This document shows positions 7,285 to 62,858 of a stretch of DNA of 64,000 bases, one piece after another. The position numbers and the translations under genes are program-made. Position 1 is the first letter of the stretch, and every line of letters begins with the position of its first letter. Source of the DNA: Auanema rhodensis (Eukaryota; Animalia; Nematoda); assembly GCA_964057225.1 (NCBI GenBank), contig OZ059894.1, forward strand, positions 6,944,001 through 7,008,000. Reading direction: 5' to 3'. The notes under the pieces are model-generated. The model saw only the letters and a list, made by a program, of their open reading frames with translations. It was not told the DNA's origin and did not search any database.

Positions 7285-9491
7285 TTAGTGACGACTTTTC
7301 TTACTATCTGAACGATCCTCTTTTTCTCCTGTTCGTTTTTTATCTTTAACTTGTTGGAAAAGATCACCGAGTCCGAAGACGTCTTGTTCGCGCTCGAACT
7401 GAAAATAATTTCTGTACACAGTTTTTTAAATATATAATTACTTGTACAGGACCAGATCCTCTAGTTCCGTTCTCAGCTCCAGAGAAGCCTTTGTCAGGCA
7501 CAAATCGTTGAGTATTAATAATCTTATCAAGGTCATCTCCATATACATCCTTGTCAATGTTTTTACCTAAAAAGGTTTAATATTCAGAGTAATAGTTATA
7601 ATTATTCTTACTAGGTCGGTAAATATGTTGCTGAACCGCATCTCCTCTCCAAGCCTTATCGTAAGGATTGTAAGTTTCATCGTCCATGGCTCCACTGTCA
7701 AGACCCTGTAGCACAAGATATTTTACGATATAAAAATTATTCACTGACCTTGCTTTGATCAAACAAGCGAGAATCGAACTGAGTTTCTCCTGCTCTAGCT
7801 TTAGTATCTGGAAGACCCAACACAATCTTTTCAGATATATCACGCTCCTTGTCTCTGAAACAATTATTTTTACAAACCAGAAAAATTATAACCCTTACCT
7901 GCGTAATTTGTCAGCTTTGTCGGGTCGACTACGCGCAATATTTCTCTCTTTTCGGATATCATCCAAACGATCACGTCTAATAGTAAGTAAAATATAAATT
8001 TTTGATTAAATAGTGCTAACCTAATTTCATCTCTCTGTTTAGCAGATTCATCTTCGTCTTCATCTCTTCTGCGGATACCAGCCCTATCTTGACGAGCTTG
8101 AGCAGCCATTTGACGCATTTTTTCTTCCTGTTCGGTTTTCTTCTGCTGAGCGAGTCGTCTTTCAAGTTGTGATCTTGCTTCAACAGATTCACGAGCTTTT
8201 CTATCAGCGATATATAAGGCTTCAGACAATTTTGCAAAATTTTCGTTGATGTGAGTCTAAATAAAAGAATAAATGAAAAAACAAATGAAAGAAAAATTTA
8301 CTTGTTGAAGACCACGTCCGTCAGCGGCTAATCTTTTGTCGAGAGCAACAGTGAAACCTGAAAAAAAAATTTATAACATTAGGTTAATATAGAACAACCT
8401 TTAGGATTTTTCCAGTTAGATATGCAAGGAGGAATTTTCCAATCATTTTGATCCTTTGTGGTAATCTAGAACTTCAATTGTACAACTAATTCGTAAAAAG
8501 CAAATAGACTTTTCTTGGAGGACTGTGCATAACTGGAGGTGGAGGGGATGGTGGAGCACGGGGAATCTTTTGATTAATTCTAAAAAACAAAAATATTCAG
8601 ATTGAAAGGGTTTCAACCAACTTGAACTTTGGTGGTTCCATAGGATCCTTTTGTTCTTCGACCATACGAATGATACGCTGTTGAGCCTCTGAATTTTTTT
8701 CGAAATTATAGCCATATATAAAACAAAGCATTACCTCCAGCTCCTCCTTGTTGGCTAGGAGTATAGCGGATATATTGAGCTGGTCCTACCTTTTCAGCAT
8801 GACGAACAGGAAGACTAGATTCAACCTTAAATATATTACAATATAAAATTTTAAATAATTAGTAGAAAAATTACCTTACTATCGGTTATTTTTCCAAGCG
8901 CAAGTCTAGTTTTTTCTGTTACATCACGAACTATGTCCGCATCTGGTCTTTGTAGATCTTCATCATCTTCATCCCACACTTTTGCTTGCATATCGGCTAA
9001 TCTACTGTGAACAATCTGAAATTCGTTTATGCCTTAAATATAGGAGCATAACTAACCTTATCTTTGCCATGCCCTAGCCTAGCAATAGCGTCAAAACGAA
9101 GCTTTCCATCAGCATCAGTTTGCAGAGCAATTTGACCATCACTTTTTCCTTTTCTCTCACCCAACCCCATACCAAGAGGAAACTGAGCGAAGTGAATTTC
9201 TGGAAATGATCCACCATCTCCGAAATCCTGAAGCAATATTATAATTAAAAAATGAATAGCAATTTTTTTTACATCAGCGGATTTGGGTTTAAATCCAACT
9301 CGATGACCGTAAGGTGGTGGCTCCTTTGTAACAACAGCTAATCCAACAGCGTCTTCTTTTCCTTTGAACCAAGGATCTCTTCGCACTTGAGCATACTCAT
9401 CAGTTACTGCGGTAGGCGCAGGAAGAAGACTTAAAAAAAAATAATACAAAATCTTTGGAACCAAAACTTACTCGGACAGTTTCATAGACAT
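7285..9491 (-). CDS. skp-1: SNW1/SKIP/Prp45 spliceosome and transcription cofactor
   Basis: MSMKLSELLPAP...EPPPYGHR...DFGDGGSFPEIHFAQFPLGMG...QYIRYTPSQQ...DPMEPPKFK...PPSPPPPVMHSP...KIPPCISNWKNPKG...LDKRLAADGRGLQ...NENFAKLSEALYIADRKARE; the SNW motif is present. Confidence 0.97.
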
Positions 9492-19800: not shown

Positions 19801-22477
19801 AAATGTACAATAACGGTAATAATGTTGTACATGATCCTCAATAACTTGCAATTTTTTGTAGAGTCTTCATCACCAGCATTTGATGAATTTCTGGATTTTC
19901 TTGGTAACCGTGTCAAGTTGAAAGGCTTTGATCAATATAAGGTTGCAGACATTTATAAAAGTTATAATATTTTATTTTATTCTGTAGGGTGGACTAGATA
20001 CTCGTGGTGATACAACCGGTACTCATTCGATTTATGTTGAACATCAAGCTCATGAAATTATGTTCCATATATCAACTTTACTTCCATTTACACCTAGTAA
20101 TAAGCAACAAGTATGATTATCAATTTTATTTTATTTTATTTTTATTTTTATTTTTATTTCAATATAATCCTTTCTATTGGCTAATGTTTTGTTTATTCAT
20201 TTTTCTTTCCAGTTACCCCGCAAGCGTCACATTGGTAATGATATGGTTACTATCATTTTCCAAGAGCCAGGTGCTCTACCCTTTTCCCCAATGACAGTTC
20301 GCAGCCATTTCCAGCATGTTTTTATTATAGTCCGTGCTCATAATGCTTGTACTGATAATACAACTTATAGGTGTGACATATACACTTACAACAACTTTTT
20401 TCTTTTTTCTTTAGTGTCGCGGTCTCTCGATCAAAAGAAGTTCCAGCATTTGGACCTCCAGTACCGCCAGGTGCTACATTCAGCAAATGCGCTGAGTTCC
20501 ATGACTGGCTCCTGACCAAGAGTATTAAATTATTTAATTTTCTTTTAATCAAAGTTTTATTCTATAGTTATTAATGCTGAAAATGCTGTTCATAAATCTA
20601 AGAAATTTGCTACAATGGCTGCAAGAACACGTCGTGAAGCTCTCCGGGATTTATGCGAGAACTATGTTGGACCACATCAAAACGAAGGACCTAGTCGCAT
20701 TGCGAGTATGTTGATGTACTTGTGAGCTTAAAAACAAAGATGATATCGTTTCAGGTCGTTTCTTAGGAGGAAGTGTCAAACGTCGAGAACGACATAACCC
20801 AAAGCCTGATATTGCAAACATGCGCGGTGCTCTATCCTGGCTTGTTGATGTTCATGATCACTCATTAAATCAGGTAGATCTTTAACTTATTTAACGTTCC
20901 TATTTGAAAATTATAATTCAGAGAGTAAATTGTGTTCTTGGTTTGTCGCAAGATGCATTAGTGCTGTTGGAAAGGCCATCAGGAACTGTTCTATTCATAA
21001 CACCAACACATTCAGTTATTGGATGGGCTGTAACAGATTTTGGGTATAACTGCTTTATAGGATACTGATATCATTTAATGTTGTTTTCAGGCTAAAACTA
21101 TACTATGATCATGGAGAAATGTTATTGCTTAGATGCTGTACTGAAACCGGGACAGATGCTGAGCAGAATGGCTTAATAAGCAGATTGCAATCCGTTACTA
21201 AGGGTGATGAGGCTAAAGAGGTTTTTATTTTCGAAAAAAACAAATTACTTACAAAACTGCTTTCAGGTGATTTTGAGGAGACCTAGAGTATCAGATACAT
21301 GGGGTTTCCATGTTCAAGAAGAAGGGGTTGTAACAGATGTAGAAATGTACCAAACAGCTTGGAAAGCTGGACTTCGTCAGGGTAGTCGGATAGTTGAGGT
21401 TTATAATCAAAAATATTATTTCATAATTGCAAGGCATTTTAGATGGAATCATTGTCTGTTGCTACTCTCGGACTTGATCGAATCAGTCAAATGTTAACAG
21501 ATAGGGAAAACTTACGGTTACTCCTCATTTCACCAGCTTCTGATGGATCGCCAAGACGAGGGTAACTATCAATTTATATTTTTTTTTCAATTGTGTTTTT
21601 TTCTTCAGATGCGAAGATCCTCATTGTCCAGCTGTACGTGGTACTATCGAAGAAATGCTGACACCTGATGCATTTGCTCGACAACCCACATTGTAAGTTC
21701 TATTATATAAACACAGATAATTCTCTTATTCAAAATGATAGAATTGACAGGTATCAAAGCATGTTCCGAATGAGAAATCAAGAATATGCCAGTTCATCCA
21801 CGAGTAGCCCTGCGAGTTCATTTGATGAACGAACATTTTCTTTCGGTTCTCGAAGACCTGATGTTACTGGTCGGGCAAACAGCTCAGGGTGAGTCAATTG
21901 TTTTTTTTTGGATTTCTTGTTACAATTTTCTTCTGAAGATCGGCATCTGTTATACATAAGTCATGCACCACAAATCGTAAACCACAGAGTACCTCAGTTC
22001 ATGAGCATATGTGTATGCTTCTGAACACTCCGAAAGGATTGAATAGAGCACAATCAGATGAACACCTTCGTTCCCCATTAGCTGAAGAATCAAAGAAAGT
22101 AAGTTACACATAAACTTTGATTTCTTATTTTTATTTAAGGCCCCATTATCAGCACGAGAATCAACTAATGACGGCGAACAGAGCGAAATAGCTAAGTGTC
22201 AGGTGCATCTAGAGCATATGCTACAAGAAAAGCGGGCCATGGACTTGATGATTCAACAACTGAGAAAACAATTGCATCATGTATGTATTTCTGTTAAAAC
22301 ATCAAAAATTTTATATTTGCTTCTTCAAAAGTTAGATAAGAGTTTGAACACAACCAAACCTTATAATCTTATAATTCAATGAATTCAATGAATAAATTTT
22401 TGTTTTAGGAGCGACAAGCACATGATAATACTCGACGCGAATTAGAACGGTTACGTACAACTCTGGAAAAACGCTAG
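16896..22477 (+). CDS. sipa-1: SIPA1/SPA-1-like Rap GTPase-activating protein with PDZ domain and C-terminal coiled coil, >20 exons
   Basis: RapGAP motifs [61 protein letters not shown]; [36 protein letters not shown]; ends ...[13 protein letters not shown]. Exon 1 (MEPGGDTCC...VIG) splices in frame to the exon at 18363. The start is less certain than the body. Confidence 0.92.
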
Positions 22478-24223
22478 ATGACCAAGAGAGATGAAACAAT
22501 TCAAAGAAAGAGCCTTCATAGAAATTTGAAAAAAAAGATCAAATAATGGACAAAATTTGTTTTAAGTTTGATAACACAAGTCCCACTACTCCCTCACATT
22601 CATTTCTTCATTTGTATTGAAGGTAGTAGCTAAGCTTCGTCATGCTTTTATCATCCGAGTTTGAACCCATTACCTTCTTTACTCATGAAAGCAATGTAAA
22701 TTTCCGTATCGTTGGTCACATAATCATTCCGTTAATAATACATAACTTCGGAGTTTCTCTCAGAAAGTTTCATTTTACCGTCAATTTCAATATGTTGTCA
22801 AGCGATTGTTACATGTACATGTTGTTTCATTCGGTTGTGCATTCGATTTTAATCCCATTGTGTATGGTAAAGACAAAATACTTTCCAACCTTCATCTCTG
22901 ATATTCTGTTTTGACCCTACCACCCCATATATATATATTACATATAATATATATTTCTACAATTTTATTTTTAAATAATGAAATATTTCTTCATTGATAC
23001 GTTATACCTATTTGCCTTTCCTGTATACCCTTGAATGCGCAAAAAAAAACAATCAACAAATAAAGAAGAAAATACTATTTCCGGGAAAGTTTTATTTTTG
23101 GCTATACAAGTCTCTCTTTCTCTCTTCATCTTCTGTCTTGTTTCTCGCATTCTATTACCCTAAAACCTTAATCCTATAAAAAATTCATCTATTTCCTCAT
23201 ATTTGTATTTTTTTTTGGTTTGTTTGTTCATTCACATGGCATTTTTTGTTTCTACCGTTGTCTAGACTAAACAGCTGCCCTTATTTTCTATTTTGAAAAT
23301 GTACTTATTTCTACCTATTCAGGAATATTCATTATAGGTATTTGAATGACAAAAAATTCCGTCTATCCGTATTAATTCAGCTAACAATCATACAAAAAAT
23401 GCACTTAATAAGTCAGCTAGAAACCATTTATTTCTTCAATTTTTCTATAATTTTCTTCTCTTTTTTTTGGCAAAAAGTTGTAATTTATATTATATTATAT
23501 TATGTTCATTAAAAATGGACTGTTGTATGTGGGTAGCATTGTATTAATATACTTTTTTTTTAATTTTTCTTCTATTTCTACTCGTTTCAACAAAAAAATT
23601 CTACAAATAGATTTTATACATTTTATTCCGGAAATATTAAAAGAATAAATATAATAGAGAGACAAAAAAACCTTTTAAAAATTGAATAAGGTTTTAAATT
23701 CTTTTTAAGACCAGAAAAAATGTGAATAATTTAGTTTATAAGTAACATAAGTTAAGAATTGATATACCAATTATATGAAATACATTATGTTTTATGTTAA
23801 CTATGAATGGAAAACTTAAATGAACCCAATGTTTACTCTTACACTTCTAAACTAAATCCCAAACTTTAGGAAATAAATTAATTCACATAGAGCAATTGCT
23901 GGACCACGGTTGTAGTTTGTCACATGAGAGGACAGGCACCAGTTTTCAGAGGATAAAAGTGAAGAAGCCAATCTTAAAGTAAGTATGGATTGTTTTAGTC
24001 ACTCAACAGTTAGCTAAGGCTTTTTGCCTCATACTAAAATCTCCAAGGCTACAACTATGCTTTCTCTATCTCTCTCCTTTTCTTGCTCTTTTTTCTTTTT
24101 CCTCAATCACTATCAATACTTTTCGTTCTCTCTTCTCTCGTTCCCGCTTTATTTTGCTCACTCTCTTATTTTATCCCTTCTCTCTCTTTTTTCCTCATCC
24201 GGCCTTTGTTCCTTATATTTAGT

Positions 24224-24602
24224 CCTCTTTCAGTTCGTTGAACAGGAGTGCATAACTCAGCACACTGCCTTGCGCCTTGTCCTCGCATCAATGTTGTTTC
24301 CTTGTAAAGTTTTTGTAAGCTTGCATACTGTCGATGACCAAGCAAGAGCAAAACAGAAGCAAACATGTTTACTTCATTATTTGTGTGTATAATATGGCGT
24401 AGCTGTTGATTTGTCTTGTTAATATAAGAAGAAGCATGTTATCACAACTAGGTCCACATGTTCTTCTTGTTCTAACACTAGCCAACGCCTATAGAAGTTA
24501 GTATCGAAGGCAACAATAGAAAACAGTACTCATTTCGTGGTTCACCTCTTTCAATTCGTTGAACAGGAGTGCATAACTTAGCACATTGCTTTGCATCTTG
24601 TC
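24224..24602 (+). repeat. Pair of ~58-bp imperfect direct repeats (24224-24281 and 24545-24602)
   Basis: cctctttcaRttcgttgaacaggagtgcataactYagcacaYtgcYttgcRYcttgtc occurs twice, 321 bp apart, with 6 transitions. Confidence 0.85.
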
Positions 24603-26541
24603 TCCACCTAAAAGTCGAACTATTTCTTTTCATAATTCCTAAACAACCGTGAAACGTTCATGCATGTGCTATGTGTATGTGCGTTAGAACATGTAGCATT
24701 TATGTGAAAATTCTGATTCTCGAAACCAATACGTTCCACTAATCCGGTATTTCTCTCTCAGTATTTCTACTCTGCATAGTGAAATTAATTGTTTCCTTTT
24801 CTGATAGCCTATTACGAATCTTATCTTTTCACATCATCGACATGATATCTACATCCTTTCATCCGTTTTCTCTTATGTGATCCATAAATAGAGCAAAATA
24901 ATGTTTTTCGATCATTACTCGATAAGTGAACATACACATACGTGTGTATTTCAATCTTTAATTCATTTTTCAAAAAAACAATCAAAATAACATTTTAGTT
25001 ATGTGATTTTACCGCTTTCAAACTATCATCACACCATTTTCCATACATCATTGAGTTTTCCGTCAACTCTTTTCAATCGGAATTTCTTTTCTTTATTTTC
25101 TGAAAATTACAAGCTCCTCCCATACTCAAACGATTTTTCGCTGAACTTTTTTATTTACATTCACACTATTTGACAATATATCTTAACTATAACTTTGTGA
25201 ATCATGTGAAGTTACCGTTAGCCTAATTTATCGTATTTAAGGAGAACTTACAGGTTTTCGGCAGTTGTTCACTCCAATTCTTTGATTTTTCATGTATCTT
25301 TAACAAACTTTCTGAAAATAAAAATATAAAAAGTAAAACGATGATAATATAGCATCGTTCTTCTTGTTTCTTTTGTTCATCTTTAGTGTTGCCCTTGACT
25401 ATAAAACGATGTCATTCTTCTCGCCTGAGGTCGTTGTCATCGATTCGGTTCTTGATGCGTAGCCATCATCATGATCATCATCGCCATCACACTCATCATC
25501 ACCTCTGCAATGGCGCTGAAGCCAGCGCCAACGTCGACGTCCTCTTCATCCGTTCGTCCAGTCATTTCTTCTTTGTGGAGCTGAAGTTGATATGATGCAG
25601 CTGACACAATAAGTATCTTACACACATACACACACATTAATTGAAAGGCCATTCTTTCTTGTATATATCTATTGAATGCCTACTACAATCACATCAGAAT
25701 CTGATCAATGTTTCAAGCAATTGTTCTTTTAAACCTTTTTTCTTTCACCACGTTGAATTGTCGTCTTTGTTACCTGTAGATGGGTGCAGTTCATCAATGA
25801 CGTGTCTGTGGTCCAGTACGACATTTTCGTGTGTTGACTATCAGAATACTTTAAGCCACATGACGATGTCAATGTGTCTGGCAGCTTAAACAATTCATTG
25901 TTTGATATTTTATTGATGTTTACTAATGCTTAATCAAATCATCAGTAAGTATACTGATTAAGTTTTATTTCTTAGTTTTACGTATTAAATCGTTCTTTTT
26001 TGAGATTGAAAAATGATAAGAGTGCTAAAAACAAAATTAAGTTGTTAAGATGCTCTGCCCTCATTTCTAAACGTACTGTCTTTGCCTATTTTGAATATGA
26101 CAACCTTAAAGTACTCCTGAAATTGACGCCATAATCTATGAAATCTTTTGTATAAAAAGGTTTTTTTTTCACTCACTTTTCAAAGTTTCAAATCTTTTTT
26201 TATACTGGATTCAATCGATTATCATTTTTTCTGGATTGAATAGACACACATACACAAATAGTTTTCTCCCATTCATGATGCTCTCTACTCATTCCTCTAT
26301 CATCTATCTATCCATCCATTCATTCATCCATCCAGTCAGTCAGCCATTCATCTGTCCGTTTTCCCATATGTTTTACAGATAATAGTTGAAAACGAAATTC
26401 CTTGTTTTGAATCTCATTAAAAACAATATAGTCTGACTAATTTATAATTTGCTTTTCTCTCTTTTTTTCTTCTTTTTATGATTTATAGCAATAATTCGAA
26501 AATATCTTTCTTATCAAGTGACCATAGTTTGATTTTCAGGT

Positions 26542-31195: not shown

Positions 31196-34100
31196 ATGGT
31201 TTTGCGGCTGGGGCTCGACGAGCCAACTACTAGTGGTTCGCCTTTGAGTTATTTGGACGTTTCTAACATGAGTCGATCTTGGACGTATGCTATCAACACC
31301 AAGAAGGCTTTTCAGACGTCAGAAAGCAACAGATCAGCGTCTCGTATCCGCTACTTTTGCGGTGGCTTTGACAATAGTAGTTGTAGGAGTAGCGGCAGCA
31401 ACATCACAACAAGGACGGAGGGTGGGCGGAGCTGGCTAGAGTTAACGGACGGCCAACTAGATACTCGGTCACAATCTGCCAGCACGATGGTCAGCACCAG
31501 TACGACAACGACGATGACGACGATGTTGGCAATCGGCATCACAATGAAGTTTGCGGATCATCCACATGTGATCCCCAACAGGATTGATGAGCCAACTCTC
31601 CAGCGATCCAACCGTCAAGGCGACCATCGTCGTATACGTACTGACCTACGAAGCAACGACAATAACGAATACGACAACGACTATCCAATGGCCAGACGAC
31701 GACGACGACGATTTTCTGATGGCCACGACGACCACGACCTAAACGACTATCCCACCGGCTTCTCGACAACCCGCGCCTCCTTGCGCCAGAGGAGGAAGAA
31801 GCATGTCCCGTCCTCATACGATAAATCCCTTTTTTCCTCCGTCTTCCACTACTGTCGAATAGCTAGACGATCGATACTTTTGGCCTTAGTATTGCTTTCA
31901 TTGATAATGACGAGTAGCGCAGCACCACCAGCTCAACGACGAGATGACTCTACATCAGTACATCTTGTACCTCAGCACATTTCCCCCATTTCTCGTGACA
32001 TTATTCCTTCTTCTGATTCTGAACCACTATCCGTGAGAGATGGTTTCATACCCTTTTCAATAGGTAAGTTAAACTTCTTTTCTTTATTTTACTTAAATTT
32101 ACTCCATGCTCATGTACTTATCTATATATCTTACTTAGTTCAAAAATCCAGATCCATTATCCTGTGTATCGTGCTGTTTATCGCGTTTTCTTTTAAAATT
32201 GTTTGGATTTCCTTTGTTGCTCTTATCAGGCTCTTGCACTCATCAGCATCTTCAAGGACAGAAAAAAAAAACTTTTTTTGCTCATTATTCTTTGGAGATT
32301 ATCGATTAGTTCAGTTGTTGATGTTAGTTGAGTTGTGATGTAGTGTGCACCTTATCCATTTAACTCATTTTATCATCACGCTCAGGTTTTCTAATTTTTC
32401 AGGAAATTCAACTGTAGCCAAGGAACAATCAAAAAACACATTCTATTCGCTTGGACATGATATTAATACAGAATCTAATCCACCAATAATTATTGCGGAT
32501 AAGCCGAAAAAGAAAAATCGAAAACCAGGTAAGACAAGATGATTCAGCTAACTATTTCTCATTCTCCCGCCATGTACATGCTCCATGTACATGCTACATT
32601 TCAATCTATTTCACTTTTTTTTCATTTCTATCACATGTCCTTCAATATTTCTTTTCTAACGCTAATTATCAAACGATTTATCTTTCATTGACTCAATTCA
32701 CTTAATCACCCGTGTTTATGAACGAAGAAGTCTTCATTCTTTTCTTCTTCCTCATTCTACTTTCTGTACCACGTATTACAAACATAATCTAATTTCATAA
32801 TGTTAATTGTTTCCAAGCAGCTTCTTAGTAAGCATATCGAGAACAGCATAACCCATACAGCGAAATCCAGTTAATGAGTTCAACTGTGGGGAACAACCTG
32901 CCGAACAACCCACTCGTCTCAATTGCCATTTGCAATAGGGATGAACTTTGTTCCCATTTCGAAGTCCGGGGACATCTTTCTATCTCTAAACCCTCTATGT
33001 GGACCATAATGATATTATCTCTCTATTCAACTCGCCTTATATTATCTAGCAATCAACTACCAGAAACATTATGACAGTGATATAAAATTGTCTCACGATT
33101 TTTCTGGAAAAAAGCCGTCACAGCGGCTGAACTAAGCGTTTACTAGTAGGAAAAGCCCACCCAAGCTCTTCAAGCGATATATTATGTTAGTTTTGTCTCT
33201 GTGAATGATTTGCTTACTTCTATAAACATCACTCAGTTGTTGCCAGTTTAAATTGGACTTGTCAGAACAGACCGAAGTTGACGAAATTTTGAAACCTTGT
33301 AGTGAAGCCTGATTAGGCAAGTCAAACATAAACTTTCAAGTTCCTATGACATCATGGATCTTTGTCCTGAGAACTCTCCAGAGAATATACTTCAAACATG
33401 CTATTTCAGTATTACTATTCTGATATTCTATTACTTTATGACCTATAGCGTTGATATGACAAGCATGAATGTAAAATTGGGAAAAACTTTGTATTTCTTC
33501 AAGATAGACAACAATCAGTAGGACTTATAATGGAACTGATTTTAGTGAATTGTACTGATAAAGTTTGTCGAGGAATCCCGTAAGACTTCCTTGTTTGAGT
33601 TTCAAAGTTTATTCAGTAACAGACAAATTTTGTATTGATTCCCCCTTATTTATTAGAAACGTTTTGGAAAACGGTTTTAATTTTCCTTTTTTTTTCGCCA
33701 AAATCTGCTCGTCATCTGTTGATAATTCGTTTTTCAATTCTATTTGAGGATTCCGAAATCGTACTTCACTCCTTCCATTCAAACTAGAAATATGGTTTTT
33801 GCAAGCTTCTTTCCTTGTATAAGAAAAACATAATCGTTAATCGAATAGAAGAAAGAATTATGAATTCGTAATTATGCTTCATATCACTGTACAACAGTAG
33901 TTCTTAGAACATTGGAATGTGATATAAGTTAGCTTATCAGCAATTTATGTATAAGGATAGCAGTTTAAAGAGAAAGAAATCAAGAGAAGGCAAACATCGG
34001 GTGCGATAAACGGGAGAAAAATTTCTGGTCCCTCTCTCTCTCTTTTCCCTTTATTAGTCTTTCACTCTCTTTCGTTTTTGATTACCATCTAATCAATTGC

Positions 34101-50608: not shown

Positions 50609-52360
50609 TTAGGTGGAACCATCATTATTAGATTCTTCTAACTGTTTCAGAAGTTCTTGGAATGTTTCTTCCCGAAGATTTTGAGTATGAATATCTATTA
50701 CGGGGTCTTCGGGATTTTTAGGTTTCAGAGTTGTTCGTACAAGTTCTTTGGACAAGTCAGTTGTGTTATTTTCTGCTCTAAAAAAAATCATTAAATTAAT
50801 AAAACTATTTTAGTTACAAGTTCGTATTTTTTCCCGTAGCTACTGCGATCTTTTCCCAGAATCGGTTTTCCTGAGCTAGTTGATCGGAAAATCTTTTTGC
50901 TGCAGTCTTTCCTTTATCATCTTTTCTACAATATTATCAGTTTAGTCTTGTATATTATAATACAAATTTACTTTGTTTCAGGAATTACTATGATTTCTTC
51001 ATTTTGCTTCTCTTGGTTTGTATCAGATGAGGCTGGTTTACTACCATCTATGACATCATGTCTGTAAAAAGTTATTCGTGCTTCTAAGTATCTGAAAATA
51101 GAAATACCTGAATGCGAAGCAACTGGTGTTCTCTCGTGTAACTTCACAGAATACTTTAGCTGCTGCATAATAAGAAAATACACCATTGGCACAGATCACA
51201 TTGAATACACCTATAGTTAGTGTTTGTATGTTTTTGAAAAAAGGAATAGAATAATAACCTCCTATTTCTCGAGCAGCTCGTTTTGCTATGGTAACTTTAG
51301 TAGCAACAATATTCTGGGATAAACTCTATAATTGATTTTAAAGATTGATCTTGTTGGACAAATTTACTTGAAGCATAATTAATCTCAATTGATTATCATT
51401 ACACTTGTTCATAAGGTGTACCACGGTTGTCGCTTTTGCTCTCTTTGCACGAATTCGCCGACCGCGAGAATTATCTTAAATTTGAATGTATTACACAGTT
51501 ACACATTCAAGCTTACAGGTCGTAGGTTCAGTATAAGTGTTTGGTGTATAAGGTTCGCTGCTCTATAAGAATAAGCTTTTTGAATTTAAAAAAGTTAATT
51601 GTAACTCACAACACAAGGCGTTGGTGGAGGTGGTGCCGGACAAGTTACGGGTGGGGGTGGATCTGGACATGCTTCACAAGGCTGGAAGAAAAACAATTAG
51701 AAAAAGTTAATAATAGGGATATCATTGCACAGCCGATACACAACCGATTTTGATAATCAAAACTTCAAAATGAAAAGACTGTTGCTAATGTATTTGTTAT
51801 GCTGATTAGCATAAAATATTCATAGTTTTTGAATAGTTTTAGATGGGTATTAGCTGGTTTATTCACTAACTGCAGGAGTGGTGCATACTGGAGCAGCAGG
51901 ACAGGAACACTAAAATGAAAAGAAATTTTAAAAAAGGAAAAGAAAAAACTTGATGTACCTCTGGCTCTTGTTTAGTCGGTGGATATGATGGAGCCTGATA
52001 CAATATTATAAGAATATGATAATATGGAATATTAATTAATGATTATACCTGAGGTTCTGTATACATGTCACTGTTTCCTCCTACTTCGGAAAGTGGTGGC
52101 TGTAATAATTTTGAATGAAAACTAATTACTTTAAACTATATCAGTCAAAGCGTCGTTTGTTTCATATAGAAGGTTTACCAACCTGTGGACCATTATTATA
52201 ACTTTTTGGCGCATCAGCTGGCGGGTAACTGCCTCCACCTTCTGCATCAGGACCCTGGAATTGGGATTCTAAAATATTTTACTTTGTTTTCTTTTACCTT
52301 GTTATACTCAGAATGGATGGATTTTGCTAGTAGTAAGAATAATAAGAAATGGAACTTCAT
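50609..52360 (-). CDS. Ground-like (hedgehog-related, grl family) secreted protein, many small exons
   Basis: Signal MKFHFLLFLLLAKSIHS; Pro/Cys-rich linker; basic site RRIRAKR; ground-like domain CNDNQLRLIMLQ...FNVICANGVFSYYAAAKVFCEVTRENTSCFAF; acidic C-terminal extension. Confidence 0.88.
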
Positions 52361-53793
52361 CTGAAGAGACGAAAAAAGCGATGTCAGAGAATGAATGAAG
52401 TCAAATTGTTCAATTTCCTATTTATATATTGGCAAATTGTTTATGGAGAAAACCTATAGCCCCCTTTCCTTCAAATGAAAGTAAAGAAACAAGTACTCAA
52501 GAGGCTTGTGCTTCACTGGTCACACCTGTTTCGTCCACATTGTGAACTCGGAATAGATTGTTGAATAGTTAAAACCAAATATTATTTTTCCGAATAATAT
52601 GTTTCAATGAGATAATACATAGAAACTTTGAATGTTTTCAAAACTTTTACAAGTAATTCTATTAATTACTATCATCAAGTGGTATAATACAAGTCTATTT
52701 CACATTTTATTTCATGAAAATGATTTTCTAACTAGAAACTTGGCATTTCACAAACACTATAAGTGTTACAAACACTTTCATAAAAACCTTGAAAACTTAA
52801 ATCATTCTTCAAGAAAAAAAACACACAAGTAATTACAGAACGTTAAAATTGCTGAATGAAGATTAAAACAGTTTTCCGGTCCACATATTGATAATCATCA
52901 TGTGGAAAATACTGAGTAAAGTGAAACGCAGCTTTACCAAGATTGGTGAAAAGCAATTGATTTGTCTTCAAAATGAATATTCTTTTGACATTCCATACAA
53001 AACGAGTATTGAAAATCAGTAGAGCAAGCATCAGTTTGTTAAATTATTAATGAATCGTTAGGTTCATTATGTTTTTTCAATATTATTCTTTGTATATTGA
53101 GTTATTAATTTTAAAGTTTTCTTTCTGCTTTATAAGCTAAGTGGATCGAATCAAGATGCTCCTGATGAAAAAAACACAGCGGCAATTCGCTAAATAATTA
53201 AGAATAGAATGACCTGAATTGAAGAGCTTTTCAAGAGCTTTGAACGTTTAAATCTGGTCTCAACGGGATGAGGATCCTAGAAACGATTCATCAACCATCA
53301 AACAGATCTGATCAAGTGGCTATATGAGCAATGACTAGATATTAGATGGCGAGTTATGATATGAAAATACATTTGCTGCCACTTGAATGGTATCCGTTCA
53401 CTTACTCATTGAATCCTTTTGTTTCTTCTAATGATACCGCCGTAAATCTTTCCAGTGTCCCATCAGACTATTTAAGCTTGAATACAGCGTGACTCATGGC
53501 TATAATTCTTATTTCCGCATCTAATAACTGACAAATAAATGGAAAAAACTATAAGAATATCTTAGTCTTAATGGAAAAAAATATATATTTTTCAGTCATT
53601 TGGATCTTTTCAGACTCCACATCGACTCATTTGTTCGTTTGTAGTTTGAATTGTGATCATGTAGTATTTCCCTACATAACAGCGTTGTGACAAGCTATTT
53701 GCAATCAAAATATTTAATATGTGATAAAAGTTATCTGATATTTACTCTTCACAATGCCTTTCCAATGATTTTTACAAAATATTCATGATCACT

Positions 53794-54686
53794 GAACAGT
53801 ATTTCTGTTTTTTATTTTCAATTTCTAGTTTTCTTGAATTTACAAATATCACAGCTTTTCCCTGCTATCCATGACGATTTGACAGTTCGAGTGTGAGACG
53901 AACAGAGAATAAGCGGAAATTGAATGAAGAAAAGACTTTAAATAGTTGAAACTGGCTTATTGCTTGGGTTTCTTCTTGTCAGTTGCTCCGCAGCTTGTTC
54001 ATGCGCATATTTGGTCATTGTTTTCCATTTTATCTGTTTGTCTATCTGCTCACTGTCAAGTTCAACGACAACAGAATGCAAAGCGAATGACGATGAGCTT
54101 TCCTCGAAGTTTTTAAGGTTTCAGACAACGGCGAGGTATCATTTTAGAAACGGAAAAAGCTTGAAACGAAAGCAGAGAGAGAGAGAGAGAAATGAATGAT
54201 TCGGCAACATGACCACATCTACGCTTTCACCAGTTCTCTCTCACATGCAGTCGCTATCTATTTCTTTTATTTTTTTGTTCGAATTTGCTCTGTTTTGAAC
54301 TGAAGAAAAAGAGAATACAGTCTTCAATCCTCTTCTCGAACCATTTCTTTTTTGCTGCCTTCTATGGAAGTTTGAAATAGATACGGCTTCGCAAAACTCT
54401 ATTCTTCTTCTGTTGTCTGATTATTGAATTTTTTTTTATTTTTAAGATTTACTAGCTAGCATACACTACCAAGCCCATGTAGCTCACAATGTTCCGCAGA
54501 CTAGTATAGTTGAGGGATTATAATACCATTTCGATACCATTTCGACATCTCAGCTGTTTTAAACAAATTTTCATTCTCGGAAGTCAGTGAATCACCTCAT
54601 TTACAATACTTTTTTGAAAAAAAAGTGAGAAGTAAATGAATATTTGAAGCTCTAAAAAGTGCTTATCTTCAATATTTTTTATAAAT
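53794..54686 (+). repeat. Left inverted-repeat arm (893 bp)
   Basis: Starts GAACAGTATTTCTG and ends AATATTTTTTATAAAT. Confidence 0.95.
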
Positions 54687-54985
54687 AAATGCAATTTCTT
54701 TTTTTTTTCAATGTTTAGGTGTGACCACTTTCTCTTATGTGACCTTCTTTTCTCATCTCACTGTGACTGAGCACAATCACATTTGCTCCAGTTGAACTAG
54801 GCGCATGCGAGGCGACACGCAACGCTTTGGGCTAGAGAGAAAGCTTGAAACGAAAAGCTCCCCTCTCCTCTTTTCTCTTTTTCTTTTGTAGAAATGAGCA
54901 CTCAAACATTAATTCATTCGAGGTTAGATTCAGAATGATCATTTATAGGTTGTGAAAATTTGGGTAACAAAATTTTTCATACATA

Positions 54986-55135
54986 TTGCGTCAGCTTTTC
55001 ACGTGTCATAAAGATGTCATCAGCTTTCTTCAAGAGAGAGGGATTCCCCCAATATCAAAACTTTGTTCTGATTGTGGTATGGAACTGAAATTATCAGTAC
55101 CAAAGGAGCGATTTCGTTGCTCCAAGAAATATTGG
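54986..55135 (+). pseudogene. N-terminal zinc-ribbon fragment of a Merlin/IS1595(ISXO2)-like transposase
   Basis: LRQLFTCHKDVISFLQERGIPPISKLCSDCGMELKLSVPKERFRCSKK fits the FL.E.G.....C..C...M.L......RC.K pattern; no DDE domain follows. Confidence 0.55.
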
Positions 55136-55191
55136 CTGCTTGTGTTTCAATTTTTTTCTGTTTTCTATCTATTTTTGGTCTCTGAATAAAT

Positions 55192-55390
55192 CGAGTAATA
55201 AAGTTTATCTTGATTTTTGGAATAACAAACCCAATGAGTACCTTGACCATCTGAAGAGTCTAAATTTATAATACCAGTTTCTTTTGGTAGTATCTTATCT
55301 GGCAAAGTGTCTCTCATGAAGATGCCTCGGAAATTCTTGATTTCTAATGTGTCTACTAATTCTAAGAGTTCGAAATTTGTTAGCGCAGCA
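55192..55390 (-). pseudogene. Truncated adenain-type cysteine protease of Maverick/Polinton (adintovirus) origin
   Basis: LTNFELLELVDTLEIKNFRGIFMRDTLPDKILPKETGIINLDSSDGQGTHWVCYSK...LYYS has the F.G.F.RD.LP and NLD....GTHWV (catalytic His) motifs and breaks off where YFDSFG would follow. Confidence 0.85.
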
Positions 55391-55464
55391 AGGTATTTTG
55401 AAAATTTCATTGATTAATTTTTTTAAAAAATGAAATGGACATCTCAACAAAAAATTGATCAAAA

Positions 55465-56357
55465 ATTTATAAAAAATATTGAAGATAAGCACTTTTTAGA
55501 GCTTCAAATATTCATTTACTTCTCACTTTTTTTTCAAAAAAGTATTGTAAATGAGGTGATTCACTGACTTCCGAGAATGAAAATTTGTTTAAAACAGCTG
55601 AGATGTCGAAATGGTATCGAAATGGTATTATAATCCCTCAACTATACTAGTCTGCGGAACATTGTGAGCTACATGGGCTTGGTAGTGTATGCTAGCTAGT
55701 AAATCTTAAAAATAAAAAAAAATTCAATAATCAGACAACAGAAGAAGAATAGAGTTTTGCGAAGCCGTATCTATTTCAAACTTCCATAGAAGGCAGCAAA
55801 AAAGAAATGGTTCGAGAAGAGGATTGAAGACTGTATTCTCTTTTTCTTCAGTTCAAAACAGAGCAAATTCGAACAAAAAAATAAAAGAAATAGATAGCGA
55901 CTGCATGTGAGAGAGAACTGGTGAAAGCGTAGATGTGGTCATGTTGCCGAATCATTCATTTCTCTCTCTCTCTCTCTGCTTTCGTTTCAAGCTTTTTCCG
56001 TTTCTAAAATGATACCTCGCCGTTGTCTGAAACCTTAAAAACTTCGAGGAAAGCTCATCGTCATTCGCTTTGCATTCTGTTGTCGTTGAACTTGACAGTG
56101 AGCAGATAGACAAACAGATAAAATGGAAAACAATGACCAAATATGCGCATGAACAAGCTGCGGAGCAACTGACAAGAAGAAACCCAAGCAATAAGCCAGT
56201 TTCAACTATTTAAAGTCTTTTCTTCATTCAATTTCCGCTTATTCTCTGTTCGTCTCACACTCGAACTGTCAAATCGTCATGGATAGCAGGGAAAAGCTGT
56301 GATATTTGTAAATTCAAGAAAACTAGAAATTGAAAATAAAAAACAGAAATACTGTTC
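55465..56357 (-). repeat. Right inverted-repeat arm (893 bp)
   Basis: Starts ATTTATAAAAAATATT and ends CAGAAATACTGTTC; reverse complement of the left arm. Confidence 0.95.
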
Positions 56358-56788
56358 TATGATCTCATGCTTTTTGAAATATATTTTTTCTCTTCAGCCC
56401 ATAATTTCCTGGTTTTTCAGTGTAATGCTCTTCCATTTTAGTAGAATTCTATATATCTTCTATACTAAATCTCAGCTTTCTTTATCAATGTTATTCAAAA
56501 TTGCATGAATGTTTAAGCATTGTGTTCATATAATCTCATTAGATTTGAAAAATGTAATGTATATCCAAATTGCAGCTAATTATATTGCCATTTACTATAT
56601 GCAAATTGCAGTTTAATAGCTTACATTTGATTATTATGAGAGACAAATGATAACATAATTTGATAAGATGTATTATCTCTTTAATCAACTATTATTCCAT
56701 ATATGCATACATGTATATAACTTGAATAATCAGCCATAAAATGAGAATTAGAATCTTTAAATCGTAGGTAGTAATAGAGAGCGAGAGT

Positions 56789-56790
<2 letters not shown>

Positions 56791-56831
<41 letters not shown>
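56791..56831. repeat. (GA)n microsatellite
   Basis: About 20 GA units. Confidence 0.95.
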
Positions 56832-59800: not shown

Positions 59801-62798
59801 AAGTGAGAGCCTCACACTGTTTCCGAAATCTGAATCATGTTTCCTACTCAATCATATGTTTTTAAGACAGATACTGCCTTGACAGGCGGTATATTTTTCC
59901 TATAAGAGACCCTGACCACAATATTCGTTCTGGCTATGTCTAGCCATGTTACTATCCCCGAGGCCATCTACTGAGGAGGAAGCCGACAGAAAGATCTTCT
60001 AATACAGCTTTTCGCCTTTCTCATATCGCTTTTCCATATCCAGTTTTAAATGGCTAAGGTTCAATCTTTAGTTTAAACCACTTTTAAATTCAAAAATAAC
60101 AATAAACATGTGTATTTTGAGATTGAAAAGGTTATTATACACATGACTCAGCCTTCACAGCATTTTTTGGAACACTTAGTCATTGAGTTCAGTGCTTGAA
60201 ACAACCATTCTGTCCTTCTACTGTCTATCAAATGAACTTGAAAACCGCCGATTTGTCCTCATTCAAAATCATAAATGAATTCATTCTCACGTCTTTACGT
60301 GAGAATCTTCACGTGTATATGTCTGACCTTCAATTGGATCTCCTATATGCCACTTCATAATGTGCTTAAAACTGTTTATATACATTTTATTATTTGCTTT
60401 ATATGGTAATTTGAGTATAATATACCCTAGAGCAAGAATTTTGGCATCTGCTTAAGAACGAAGTAGCGAAATGAGGATGAGGATCATTTGAAAGGATATG
60501 AGGACACAGCGATGTTCCATCTTCTTCTTTTATGGATACATAAGATCATATCGACTAGCTAGTAAACGCAAAGACTCCTCCGTCATTGCGAGATAAGCTT
60601 CTCAACCTCTTCATCTGTTCCTTATTCTTCTTTTCGTCGTTTTTGAATTGTGTTGATAATCGTCGTCAAAGAAATTGAGAAGAAAAAGATCTTTTTTTTT
60701 CATTTCGAATAGTATTTGTTTGAACGTTTTCCCTTCATTTTGAACAACGGGATTCTGAATGTGTTGCTTGAACTACATATTCAATGATCATTCTTTTGGC
60801 ATCAAAAATATAGACATATAACCATATTTATCCATGAATACATTGACATATTATTGTATTTTCTGTATCAATATCGTCATTTCGATCCTCTTTTTTACTT
60901 TGTTCTTCTTCTTTTTTTTTCTTTCGGCTATTTGCCTTTCTGTCTGCCTGTCCATGCACTTTAACTAGAAAATGGACGATAAACAAGTGATGCTAGAGTC
61001 AAGACACCTAGTTATAACTTGTCAATCTGATGATTGCAATGGCAGATTTTCTGGTTACATGCTTGCTAGCTAGTATCTCTTCCATATACTCAGCTGTTAT
61101 ACCAGCTTTTTATTCTATTCTCTCTTTTATCAACCTGATTCATTCATTATTTAGCAGTGGAGGAAGACTCTTTGTAGGATAGATAGACGGCTAAACGCTT
61201 AAGTAAAGAAGACACAGAAAATAATAGAAAGATAGAGATGAGGAGGGAGAAAGATGAATTAAGAGAGAGATAAAGAACGAGGAAGAGAAGGTTAGCTGAC
61301 GTGGTTAGAACCAGATTCTGCTTCATATGACACATGACTGAAGCCCGTCCTGGCCTGACACTAGCATAACTACTACATAGCATCACAGCAAGGGAGTGGA
61401 TGAAAGAAAGAAAAAGAGACGAGTGATAGGTTCCTGTGCAGTTCCTGTGAAATACACAGAGACTGACAATGCGAGGGAAAGAGAGATGCCTATGAATAGT
61501 AATAATGAGAGGTAGTTGTGAGAGGGATAGACAGTTAGAGAAGGAGACAGATAGCGACTATGAGGTATACTAGACAGATAACAATCTCATATCCAGATTT
61601 TATGCGATTCTAGATTATTATGCAATACCTATTATAACATAGTTAAATGTGAAATACAACTATCTCTCAACTTATTGCCAGAACATCTGCATAGATTAGG
61701 TAAAAGATAACCACTATGCTACGCTATTCTCTCTCTCTATATATACATTACATGTCAAAATAATGTTAAATATGAAAGAAATTGCTAAATTGCTTATGTG
61801 AAAACTTGTCCATGTACAAGGTTCATCATATTTTCCAGAAATATGCATTATCTCATCAATTTCTATTTGCCTCTTATCATCTTTCAATCCGTTTCTGTAT
61901 TTCTCGATATCTCTCTAAATCATATTCCATATAAGCCATTGCCCCCATCACTGCCAACTTACGATCTTTTTCTCTCCTTGGTTCTCTGAAATTCTCTCTC
62001 TTTATCATCATCTCACTTTCTTTTCTTTTAAGTCTTTCTTCTCCTTCTTCTCTTTACTTCTCCTTTTCTTATACCCCTCCCCCCACCATCTACCTCAAGG
62101 ATATTGAAGAGGTGAAAAAGAGAGAATGATTTCACTAATAGATAATATCATTAAATGTGAATGTTGATAGACACAGAGGGCTAAGCGAGCTGACATTGAA
62201 AATTCGAGTTAAGGCTTGAAAGATGATAATCGTTAACAACATCATACTATCTCGGATTCTCTTCTCCTTCAGAATATCTAATGTCGATCATTTTAAACAA
62301 TCGTCTTGTACTTTCATATTGTTTTTATTCTCTTGTCAAACTTTCTTCAAGTACGTTATTGACTATGAGAATGTTCCAGTGCGTCTTTAGCATTGAATCA
62401 CAATCCTTGTCTTCTAATAAGTAAACTAAAGACTTTAACCTTTTTTAATGATTATGAGCATCTTCTTCATCTAATTAACTTATTAAGATGATATGTGAAA
62501 CCGTAAGTTCTGCCATTCATATCATTATTGAATAAACTTTTTCTTTTCTATTCGTTTTGCTTCCTTTCCTATTAGATATAAGCCAGTTTATTGAAGAAAA
62601 AGAAATCAATCGAGTTCACCGTTGACGATGTGATTCTTCTTTGTATATGCCTTTTCATCCTGTTAACATATCTGGCTTTTGAATGTTAAAAATTCTGTCT
62701 TTATGTGTTTTTAGTTGCAAATTGTTTAGTGATTGTTAAGGATTTTTTCATTTTCTAGGCCAAATCCTTGTAACTATAACTAACTTCTATGTTCCTAC

Positions 62799-62807
62799 TC
62801 TCTCTCG

Positions 62808-62858
<51 letters not shown>
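62799..62858. repeat. (TC)n microsatellite
   Basis: Long TC run. Confidence 0.95.

Follow-up and report, generated by a model that had tools for sequence, protein, structure and literature searches.

Virus-like Maverick DNA has been found inside other mobile elements in nematodes before. In Caenorhabditis briggsae, a Mutator-like element (MULE) with 870-bp terminal inverted repeats (TIRs) captured Maverick cargo, and the interplay of MULE and Maverick produced a toxin-antidote element (Widen et al., bioRxiv 10.1101/2022.07.12.499685). Maverick/Polinton elements have TIRs of 100-1500 bp, target-site duplications of 5-8 bp and a size of 13-25 kb (Jeong et al., PMC10748475). Nematode Mavericks are mostly fragmentary, and in the one that Widen et al. 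(bioRxiv 10.1101/2022.07.12.499685) treat in their Discussion, the polymerase and cargo genes have their 3' ends next to a terminal repeat. Full-length Polintons are on record for many nematodes, Auanema rhodensis among them. Here we describe a 2.56-kb structure from A. rhodensis (assembly GCA_964057225.1, contig OZ059894.1, positions 6,944,001 to 7,008,000 of the forward strand; this whole stretch of 64 kb is called the window, and positions below are counted from its first letter), in which two perfect inverted arms enclose a core with a piece of a Maverick-type protease gene. Both the inverted repeat and the protease scrap are real, and together they add one more case to kinds of structure already known. 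Our tentative reading, to which we give a probability of about 0.4, is that the structure represents a copy of a non-autonomous DNA element with long TIRs, foldback-like or Pack-MULE-like, carrying a Maverick scrap.

The left arm (53794-54686) and the right arm (55465-56357) are each 893 nt long, and a base-by-base check found the right arm to be the exact reverse complement of the left, with 0 mismatches in 1786 nt and an (AG)8 run of equal length in both. The spacer between them, referred to here as the core, is 778 nt (54687-55464). An earlier interpretation made from the letters alone (the sequence-only reading) had described perfect 893-bp arms, microsatellite included, around a 778-bp spacer, and its coordinates and lengths proved correct. 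The repeat finder reported the arms as 53787-54686 and 55465-56364, 900 nt each, as the window's one outstanding inverted repeat; the longer version arises because two mismatches followed by five matching bases lie immediately beyond the 893-nt perfect stretch. Local alignment of 40, 100 and 300 nt outside and inside the arms gave nothing above shuffled controls in inverted or direct orientation, and because of this lack of similarity the boundaries are sharp, with identity dropping from 100% to none at all four. An old, longer repeat with a homogenised centre was considered and rejected, as neither a decayed inverted extension nor flank-to-flank direct similarity rose above shuffles. Arms this perfect may have arisen recently, may be kept alike by continuing gene conversion, or may have been polished during assembly. 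Recent origin, expressed as 'young' in the sequence-only reading, is therefore one reading of the perfect arms, and gene conversion or polishing gives the same picture. Nematodes mutate at a few per billion sites per generation, and with this rate a recent origin of the arms would mean roughly 10^5 generations or fewer.

The core (GC content 0.35, with no Rfam match) carries on its minus strand an 82-codon open piece (55168-55413) that is a relic of an adenain-like cysteine protease (Peptidase C5, Maverick/Polinton-type), recognised through the homology of its relatives. The relic itself had no direct match in Pfam or among PDB sequences, and nothing was found until the relatives were brought in. 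Among 1.84 billion representative proteins there were 913 relatives at E<=1e-3 and 134 at E<=1e-10, the best of them 68% identical (E 4.5e-24), and the closest relative overall was an unnamed open reading frame (ORF) of a public read-set assembly with 74% identity. Full-length relatives passed Pfam's own threshold for Peptidase_C5 (adenovirus endoprotease), 13 of the 38 aligned in all, and one relative (P0025) is a fusion to an rve integrase with a chromodomain, with the match to the window confined to its protease part. The profile built from the relatives matches both adenain (PDB 1avp, E 7e-9) and the S273R protease of African swine fever virus (E 1e-7). A structural model of the relic made with the alignment (mean predicted local distance difference test, pLDDT, 84) superposes on the N-terminal half of adenain (1avp/1nln), and its six best fold matches are adenovirus proteases, with a probability of 1.00 and template modelling (TM) scores of 0.62-0.67 on the query over approximately 70 columns. 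In contrast to adenain and S273R, the relic is N-terminal only and the nucleophile-bearing part is absent; its identity to adenain is about 20%. The relatives, the profile and the fold matches together give highly significant backing to the fragment of a Maverick-type adenain protease that had been proposed from the letters and that reads inward from the right arm, and for the accompanying statement that nematode Mavericks carry adenain proteases there is published precedent in the form of adenovirus-like proteases.

The protease gene was broken once, by a C-terminal truncation, and the retained part has no stops or frameshifts. The first residue of the relatives aligns opposite the relic's methionine, and thus the native start codon has been kept. 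In the aligned part, the relic preserves every invariant and nearly invariant column, including the H-W pair of the conserved G-x-H-W stretch. The family profile covers the relic at positions 19-89 of 157 (E 8e-38), which is the N-terminal 45% or so. For each of the 46 relatives of at least 150 amino acids, the match to the window is a single stretch in a single frame, the outermost limits being 55159-55401, and a search for the remaining protease in other frames or elsewhere in 53-57.2 kb returned only noise; a frameshifted full-length gene was accordingly rejected. Nothing is detectable downstream of the H-W pair, and a complete catalytic domain, with the histidine and a downstream acidic residue and cysteine, is not present. 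In random sequence of the same composition, the probability per start of a frame staying open for 82 codons is about 0.006, a value that fits a relic that has not gone through long decay. No other Maverick gene was found in the window (no polymerase, integrase or capsid remnant). The gene content is likewise not that of a Maverick/Polinton: no ORF in the element exceeds 85 codons, Pfam found nothing of this kind in the window's long ORFs, and the longest of these, at 380 amino acids, leaves the window without an ORF of Maverick size.

The plus strand of the core has an open piece of 73 codons (54968-55186) with a zinc-ribbon-like CxxC...C pattern. It shares 19 nt with the end of the protease piece, and the frames thus do meet tail to tail, as the sequence-only reading had it. 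That reading had seen two mobile-gene fragments here, of which the protease was borne out and the Merlin-like transposase on the plus strand was not: what was found is an open frame with the CxxC...C pattern, for which Pfam gave only sub-threshold generic zinc-ribbon matches, NCBIfam and PDB gave nothing, and the word-indexed protein search, which spans proteins of 40-128 amino acids only, gave no candidate. Since this search is blind to full-length kin, the Merlin/IS1595 reading is unsupported rather than disproved. The piece has no paralogue in the window, its single-sequence model (pLDDT 51) was unusable, and no ORF of the length of a DDE transposase is present; it may be non-coding.

The arms are non-coding, with a GC content of 0.35, close to the 0.31-0.32 of the flanks. 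Their longest open piece (85 codons) had no family match in Pfam and NCBIfam searches, and the arms matched no RNA family. They bear no mark of host exons, nor of the termini of any known transposon family. One 15-mer, AAGCTTGAAACGAAA, is found in exact copies in the core (54841-54855, plus strand) and in both arms (54157-54171 and 55980-55994), with no further occurrence in the window; with up to two mismatches allowed, 0.55 matches are expected, and the similarities between arm and core are otherwise weak. After the shared 15-mer, arm and core alike have a run rich in purines or pyrimidines, with AAATGA next. The 15-mer and the run that follows may be a promoter or leader remnant common to arm and core.

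Outside the arms, the 6-base direct repeat ATGATC is found on the plus strand at 53785-53790, ending 3 bases before the left arm, and at 56359-56364, beginning 1 base past the right arm. An exact repeat of at least 6 bases within 3 bases of both points was found in 0.66% (0.0066) of 20,000 random point pairs at equal spacing. The flanking 9-mers noted earlier (53784-53792 and 56358-56366) are indeed there and match in 7 of 9 positions, and such a match within 1 base was obtained in 1.0% of 20,000 random point pairs at equal spacing. A third reading of the end similarity is a 4-base TCAT repeat (4/4), which abuts the 900-nt version of the arms. The near-terminal direct repeat is suggestive of an insertion, but it was picked out post hoc. 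Other observations were made at the junctions. At three of the four arm boundaries, GATC lies beyond the arm, no more than 10 nt away (naive probability 3e-5, post hoc), and TGATC(A) is found at 53786-53791, 55456-55461 and 56360-56364, 2-3 nt outside three of the four, with further sites at 53654 and 54936. TGATCA is locally enriched, 4 of the window's 34 sites falling between 53654 and 55461 outside the arms, again post hoc. Hand-built template-switch models of the junctions were also tried and set aside, each of them leaving two bases unexplained.

According to the reading we favour, the arms would be the terminal repeats of the element, and the core would be cargo taken from a decayed or resident Maverick together with DNA from another source. 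The element would encode nothing functional, and any past movement would have relied on an enzyme encoded elsewhere that recognised the tips of the arms; the near-terminal ATGATC pair would be what is left of a target-site duplication. In line with this, the arm similarity stops abruptly at four boundaries, and there is a direct repeat near both outer ends, with a chance of about 1%. With its short stretch of a mobile or viral gene, the sole protease-like sequence of the window, the core resembles that of cargo-carrying long-TIR elements. The MULE with 870-bp TIRs holding Maverick cargo offers a published parallel from another nematode. The lack of a Maverick-size ORF in the window, the mostly fragmentary state of nematode Mavericks, the full-length Polintons of A. 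rhodensis and the Auanema origin of the window's only named protein relative also fit this reading. The likeness to the C. briggsae cargo-carrying MULE lies in the inverted arms of approximately 0.9 kb, the short internal Maverick-derived gene piece and the nematode host, while the captured piece differs in being a core Maverick gene, the protease, and not cargo. The locus is similar to Foldback (FB) elements in having long inverted arms that make up most of the element (70% here) and a short variable middle; unlike in FB, the arms are unique sequence instead of arrays of tandem subrepeats, and there is no FB-type coding capacity.

Several results weigh against this interpretation. The longest direct repeat that abuts the perfect arms is a single base. 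The exact 6/6 match at offsets of 3 and 1, the 7/9 match at an offset of 1 and the 4/4 TCAT match are three readings of one coincidence, chosen with post-hoc freedom. MULEs and Pack-MULEs have an abutting duplication of 9-11 bp, whereas the 7/9 match stands one base off the left arm and has a chance of about 0.01, and its two mismatches fit poorly with arms that are flawless; the Pack-MULE label of the sequence-only reading is for these reasons not established. No tandem arrays or subterminal repeats were found in the arms when these were looked for. No transposase, of MULE type or other, was identified at the element or nearby by Pfam among the long ORFs of the window and in the 3-kb flanks, and in this respect also the locus departs from the C. 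briggsae MULE. Finally, no further copy of the arm or the core exists within the 64-kb window, where the structure is single-copy.

The alternative that fares best, although we hold it to be rather doubtful, is a local inverted duplication, in which about 0.9 kb of intergenic DNA beside an old Maverick scrap would have been copied in inverted orientation when replication switched template or a break was repaired, either recently or earlier with subsequent gene conversion. Such an event needs no element family. It is consistent with arms that do not code for protein, show none of the internal structure of transposons and are not repeated elsewhere in the window, and the lack of an abutting target-site duplication and the commonly fragmentary state of nematode Mavericks point in the same direction. 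The GATC near three of the four boundaries could hint at microhomology-guided switching (3e-5, post hoc). However, no simple switch model was found for the junctions, where two mismatched bases stand between the arms and a 5-base palindromic match, and a duplication of this kind does not predict the near-terminal direct repeat.

It is unlikely that the structure is a gutted Maverick/Polinton whose arms are, or include, its own TIRs and whose internal genes have nearly all been lost save the start of the protease. The locus shares an adenain-type protease sequence with nematode Mavericks, the sole identifiable gene piece being of Maverick type; its 893-nt arms fall inside the published 100-1500 bp and are non-coding, as terminal repeats are, and the exact 6-base direct repeat near both ends fits the published duplications of 5-8 bp. 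On the other hand, the ATGATC copies stand 3 and 1 bases off the arms, which would leave the tips unequal, and the structure measures 2.56 kb in comparison to 13-25 kb, with the protease cut to about 45% of the profile, no polymerase, integrase, ATPase or capsid genes of its own, and polymerase, integrase and capsid remnants not found in the window either. Furthermore, the arm adjoins the 5' end of the protease here, versus the 3' ends of polymerase and cargo genes in the published nematode Maverick. A more daring proposal, for which we see just a slim chance, is that the locus is an integrated defective 'mini-Maverick', with arms formed by inverted end duplication during its own replication and able to ride on full-length elements, or else a second independent capture of Maverick DNA by a long-TIR element, in a nematode lineage outside Caenorhabditis.

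Over-polishing, where arms that are merely similar are made identical by multiply mapped reads, would also be expected to leave no difference across 1786 nt and the microsatellite; a chimeric foldback read built into the contig is the other form such an assembly artefact could take. An artefact is quite unlikely: the structure lies inside the contig, flanked by unique sequence on either side, its core is genuine DNA with a gene relic in it, and a foldback chimera would normally continue into the inverted left flank, which is not seen. A hairpin-RNA locus used by the host, in which the arms would be kept identical because the long stem is processed into small interfering RNAs, is very improbable in spite of the suitable geometry of a perfect 893-bp stem with a 778-nt loop and of a core that folds somewhat better than shuffles (z -3.65), as the arms match no other sequence in the window that they could regulate and the virus-like piece, lying in the loop, would give no double-stranded RNA. 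In the reading we favour, too, a read-through transcript would form a double-stranded RNA stem of about 0.9 kb, and because the protease scrap would be in the loop, any small RNAs would derive from and target the arms, not the protease or Mavericks.

Should the arm pair turn out to be multi-copy, the locus would newly document, in a nematode that has been little studied, traffic between an element of the cut-and-paste type and a virus-like Maverick. A single-copy pair would instead represent a very recent inverted duplication beside viral debris, of use for marking structural mutation or for warning about assembly quality, no more. There is no intact gene anywhere in the 2.56 kb, and either way the structure probably holds nothing functional, given that its sole recognisable gene is cut to less than half.

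The surroundings of the repeat are AT-rich eukaryotic DNA of a host that is a rhabditid-type nematode. The nematode host was recognised correctly from the letters: the longest ORF of the window (380 codons, 31196-32338, plus strand, no Pfam match) has as its sole named relative a protein with a DAN domain from Auanema sp. JU1783, distant and aligned over 14% of the length, and an exon of the Ground-like family, which we take to be nematode-typical, is found near the repeat. The 380-codon ORF may be a fast-evolving or mis-joined gene. The Ground-like piece (51059-51325, minus strand) matches the C-terminal half of Pfam PF04155 with E 8e-7, which does not reach the gathering score. It probably belongs to a nematode grl-type gene as one of its exons, approximately 2.5 kb left of the repeat, and the inverted repeat may sit in the upstream region of this gene. 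It was the only family found by Pfam in open pieces within 3 kb on either side of the repeat, where no mobile-element gene was seen, and credible exons are few in the 20 kb around. Rfam and tRNA searches gave nothing, none of ten local ATG ORFs, the protease relic included, was found in the protein collection by exact look-up (0/10), and a 25-mer of the left (host) flank had no match in a metagenome scan.

Farther away, Pfam identified a SKIP/SNW exon (7873-8229, minus strand) and, about 12 kb from it, a Rap-GAP exon (20177-20512, plus strand). The C. elegans genes skp-1 and sipa-1 are presumably also neighbours, so this pair would mean conserved synteny. The motif TTTTCAG is mildly enriched in the window. 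A low-complexity inverted pair is formed by (AG)28 at 56776-56831, 420 nt right of the repeat, and (CT)30 at 62798-62858, approximately 6 kb apart. In addition, a 71-nt direct repeat (24224-24294 and 24545-24615, 83% identical, 321 nt apart) lies inside or beside a 122-codon ORF (24024-24392) and may be a repeated exon or domain.

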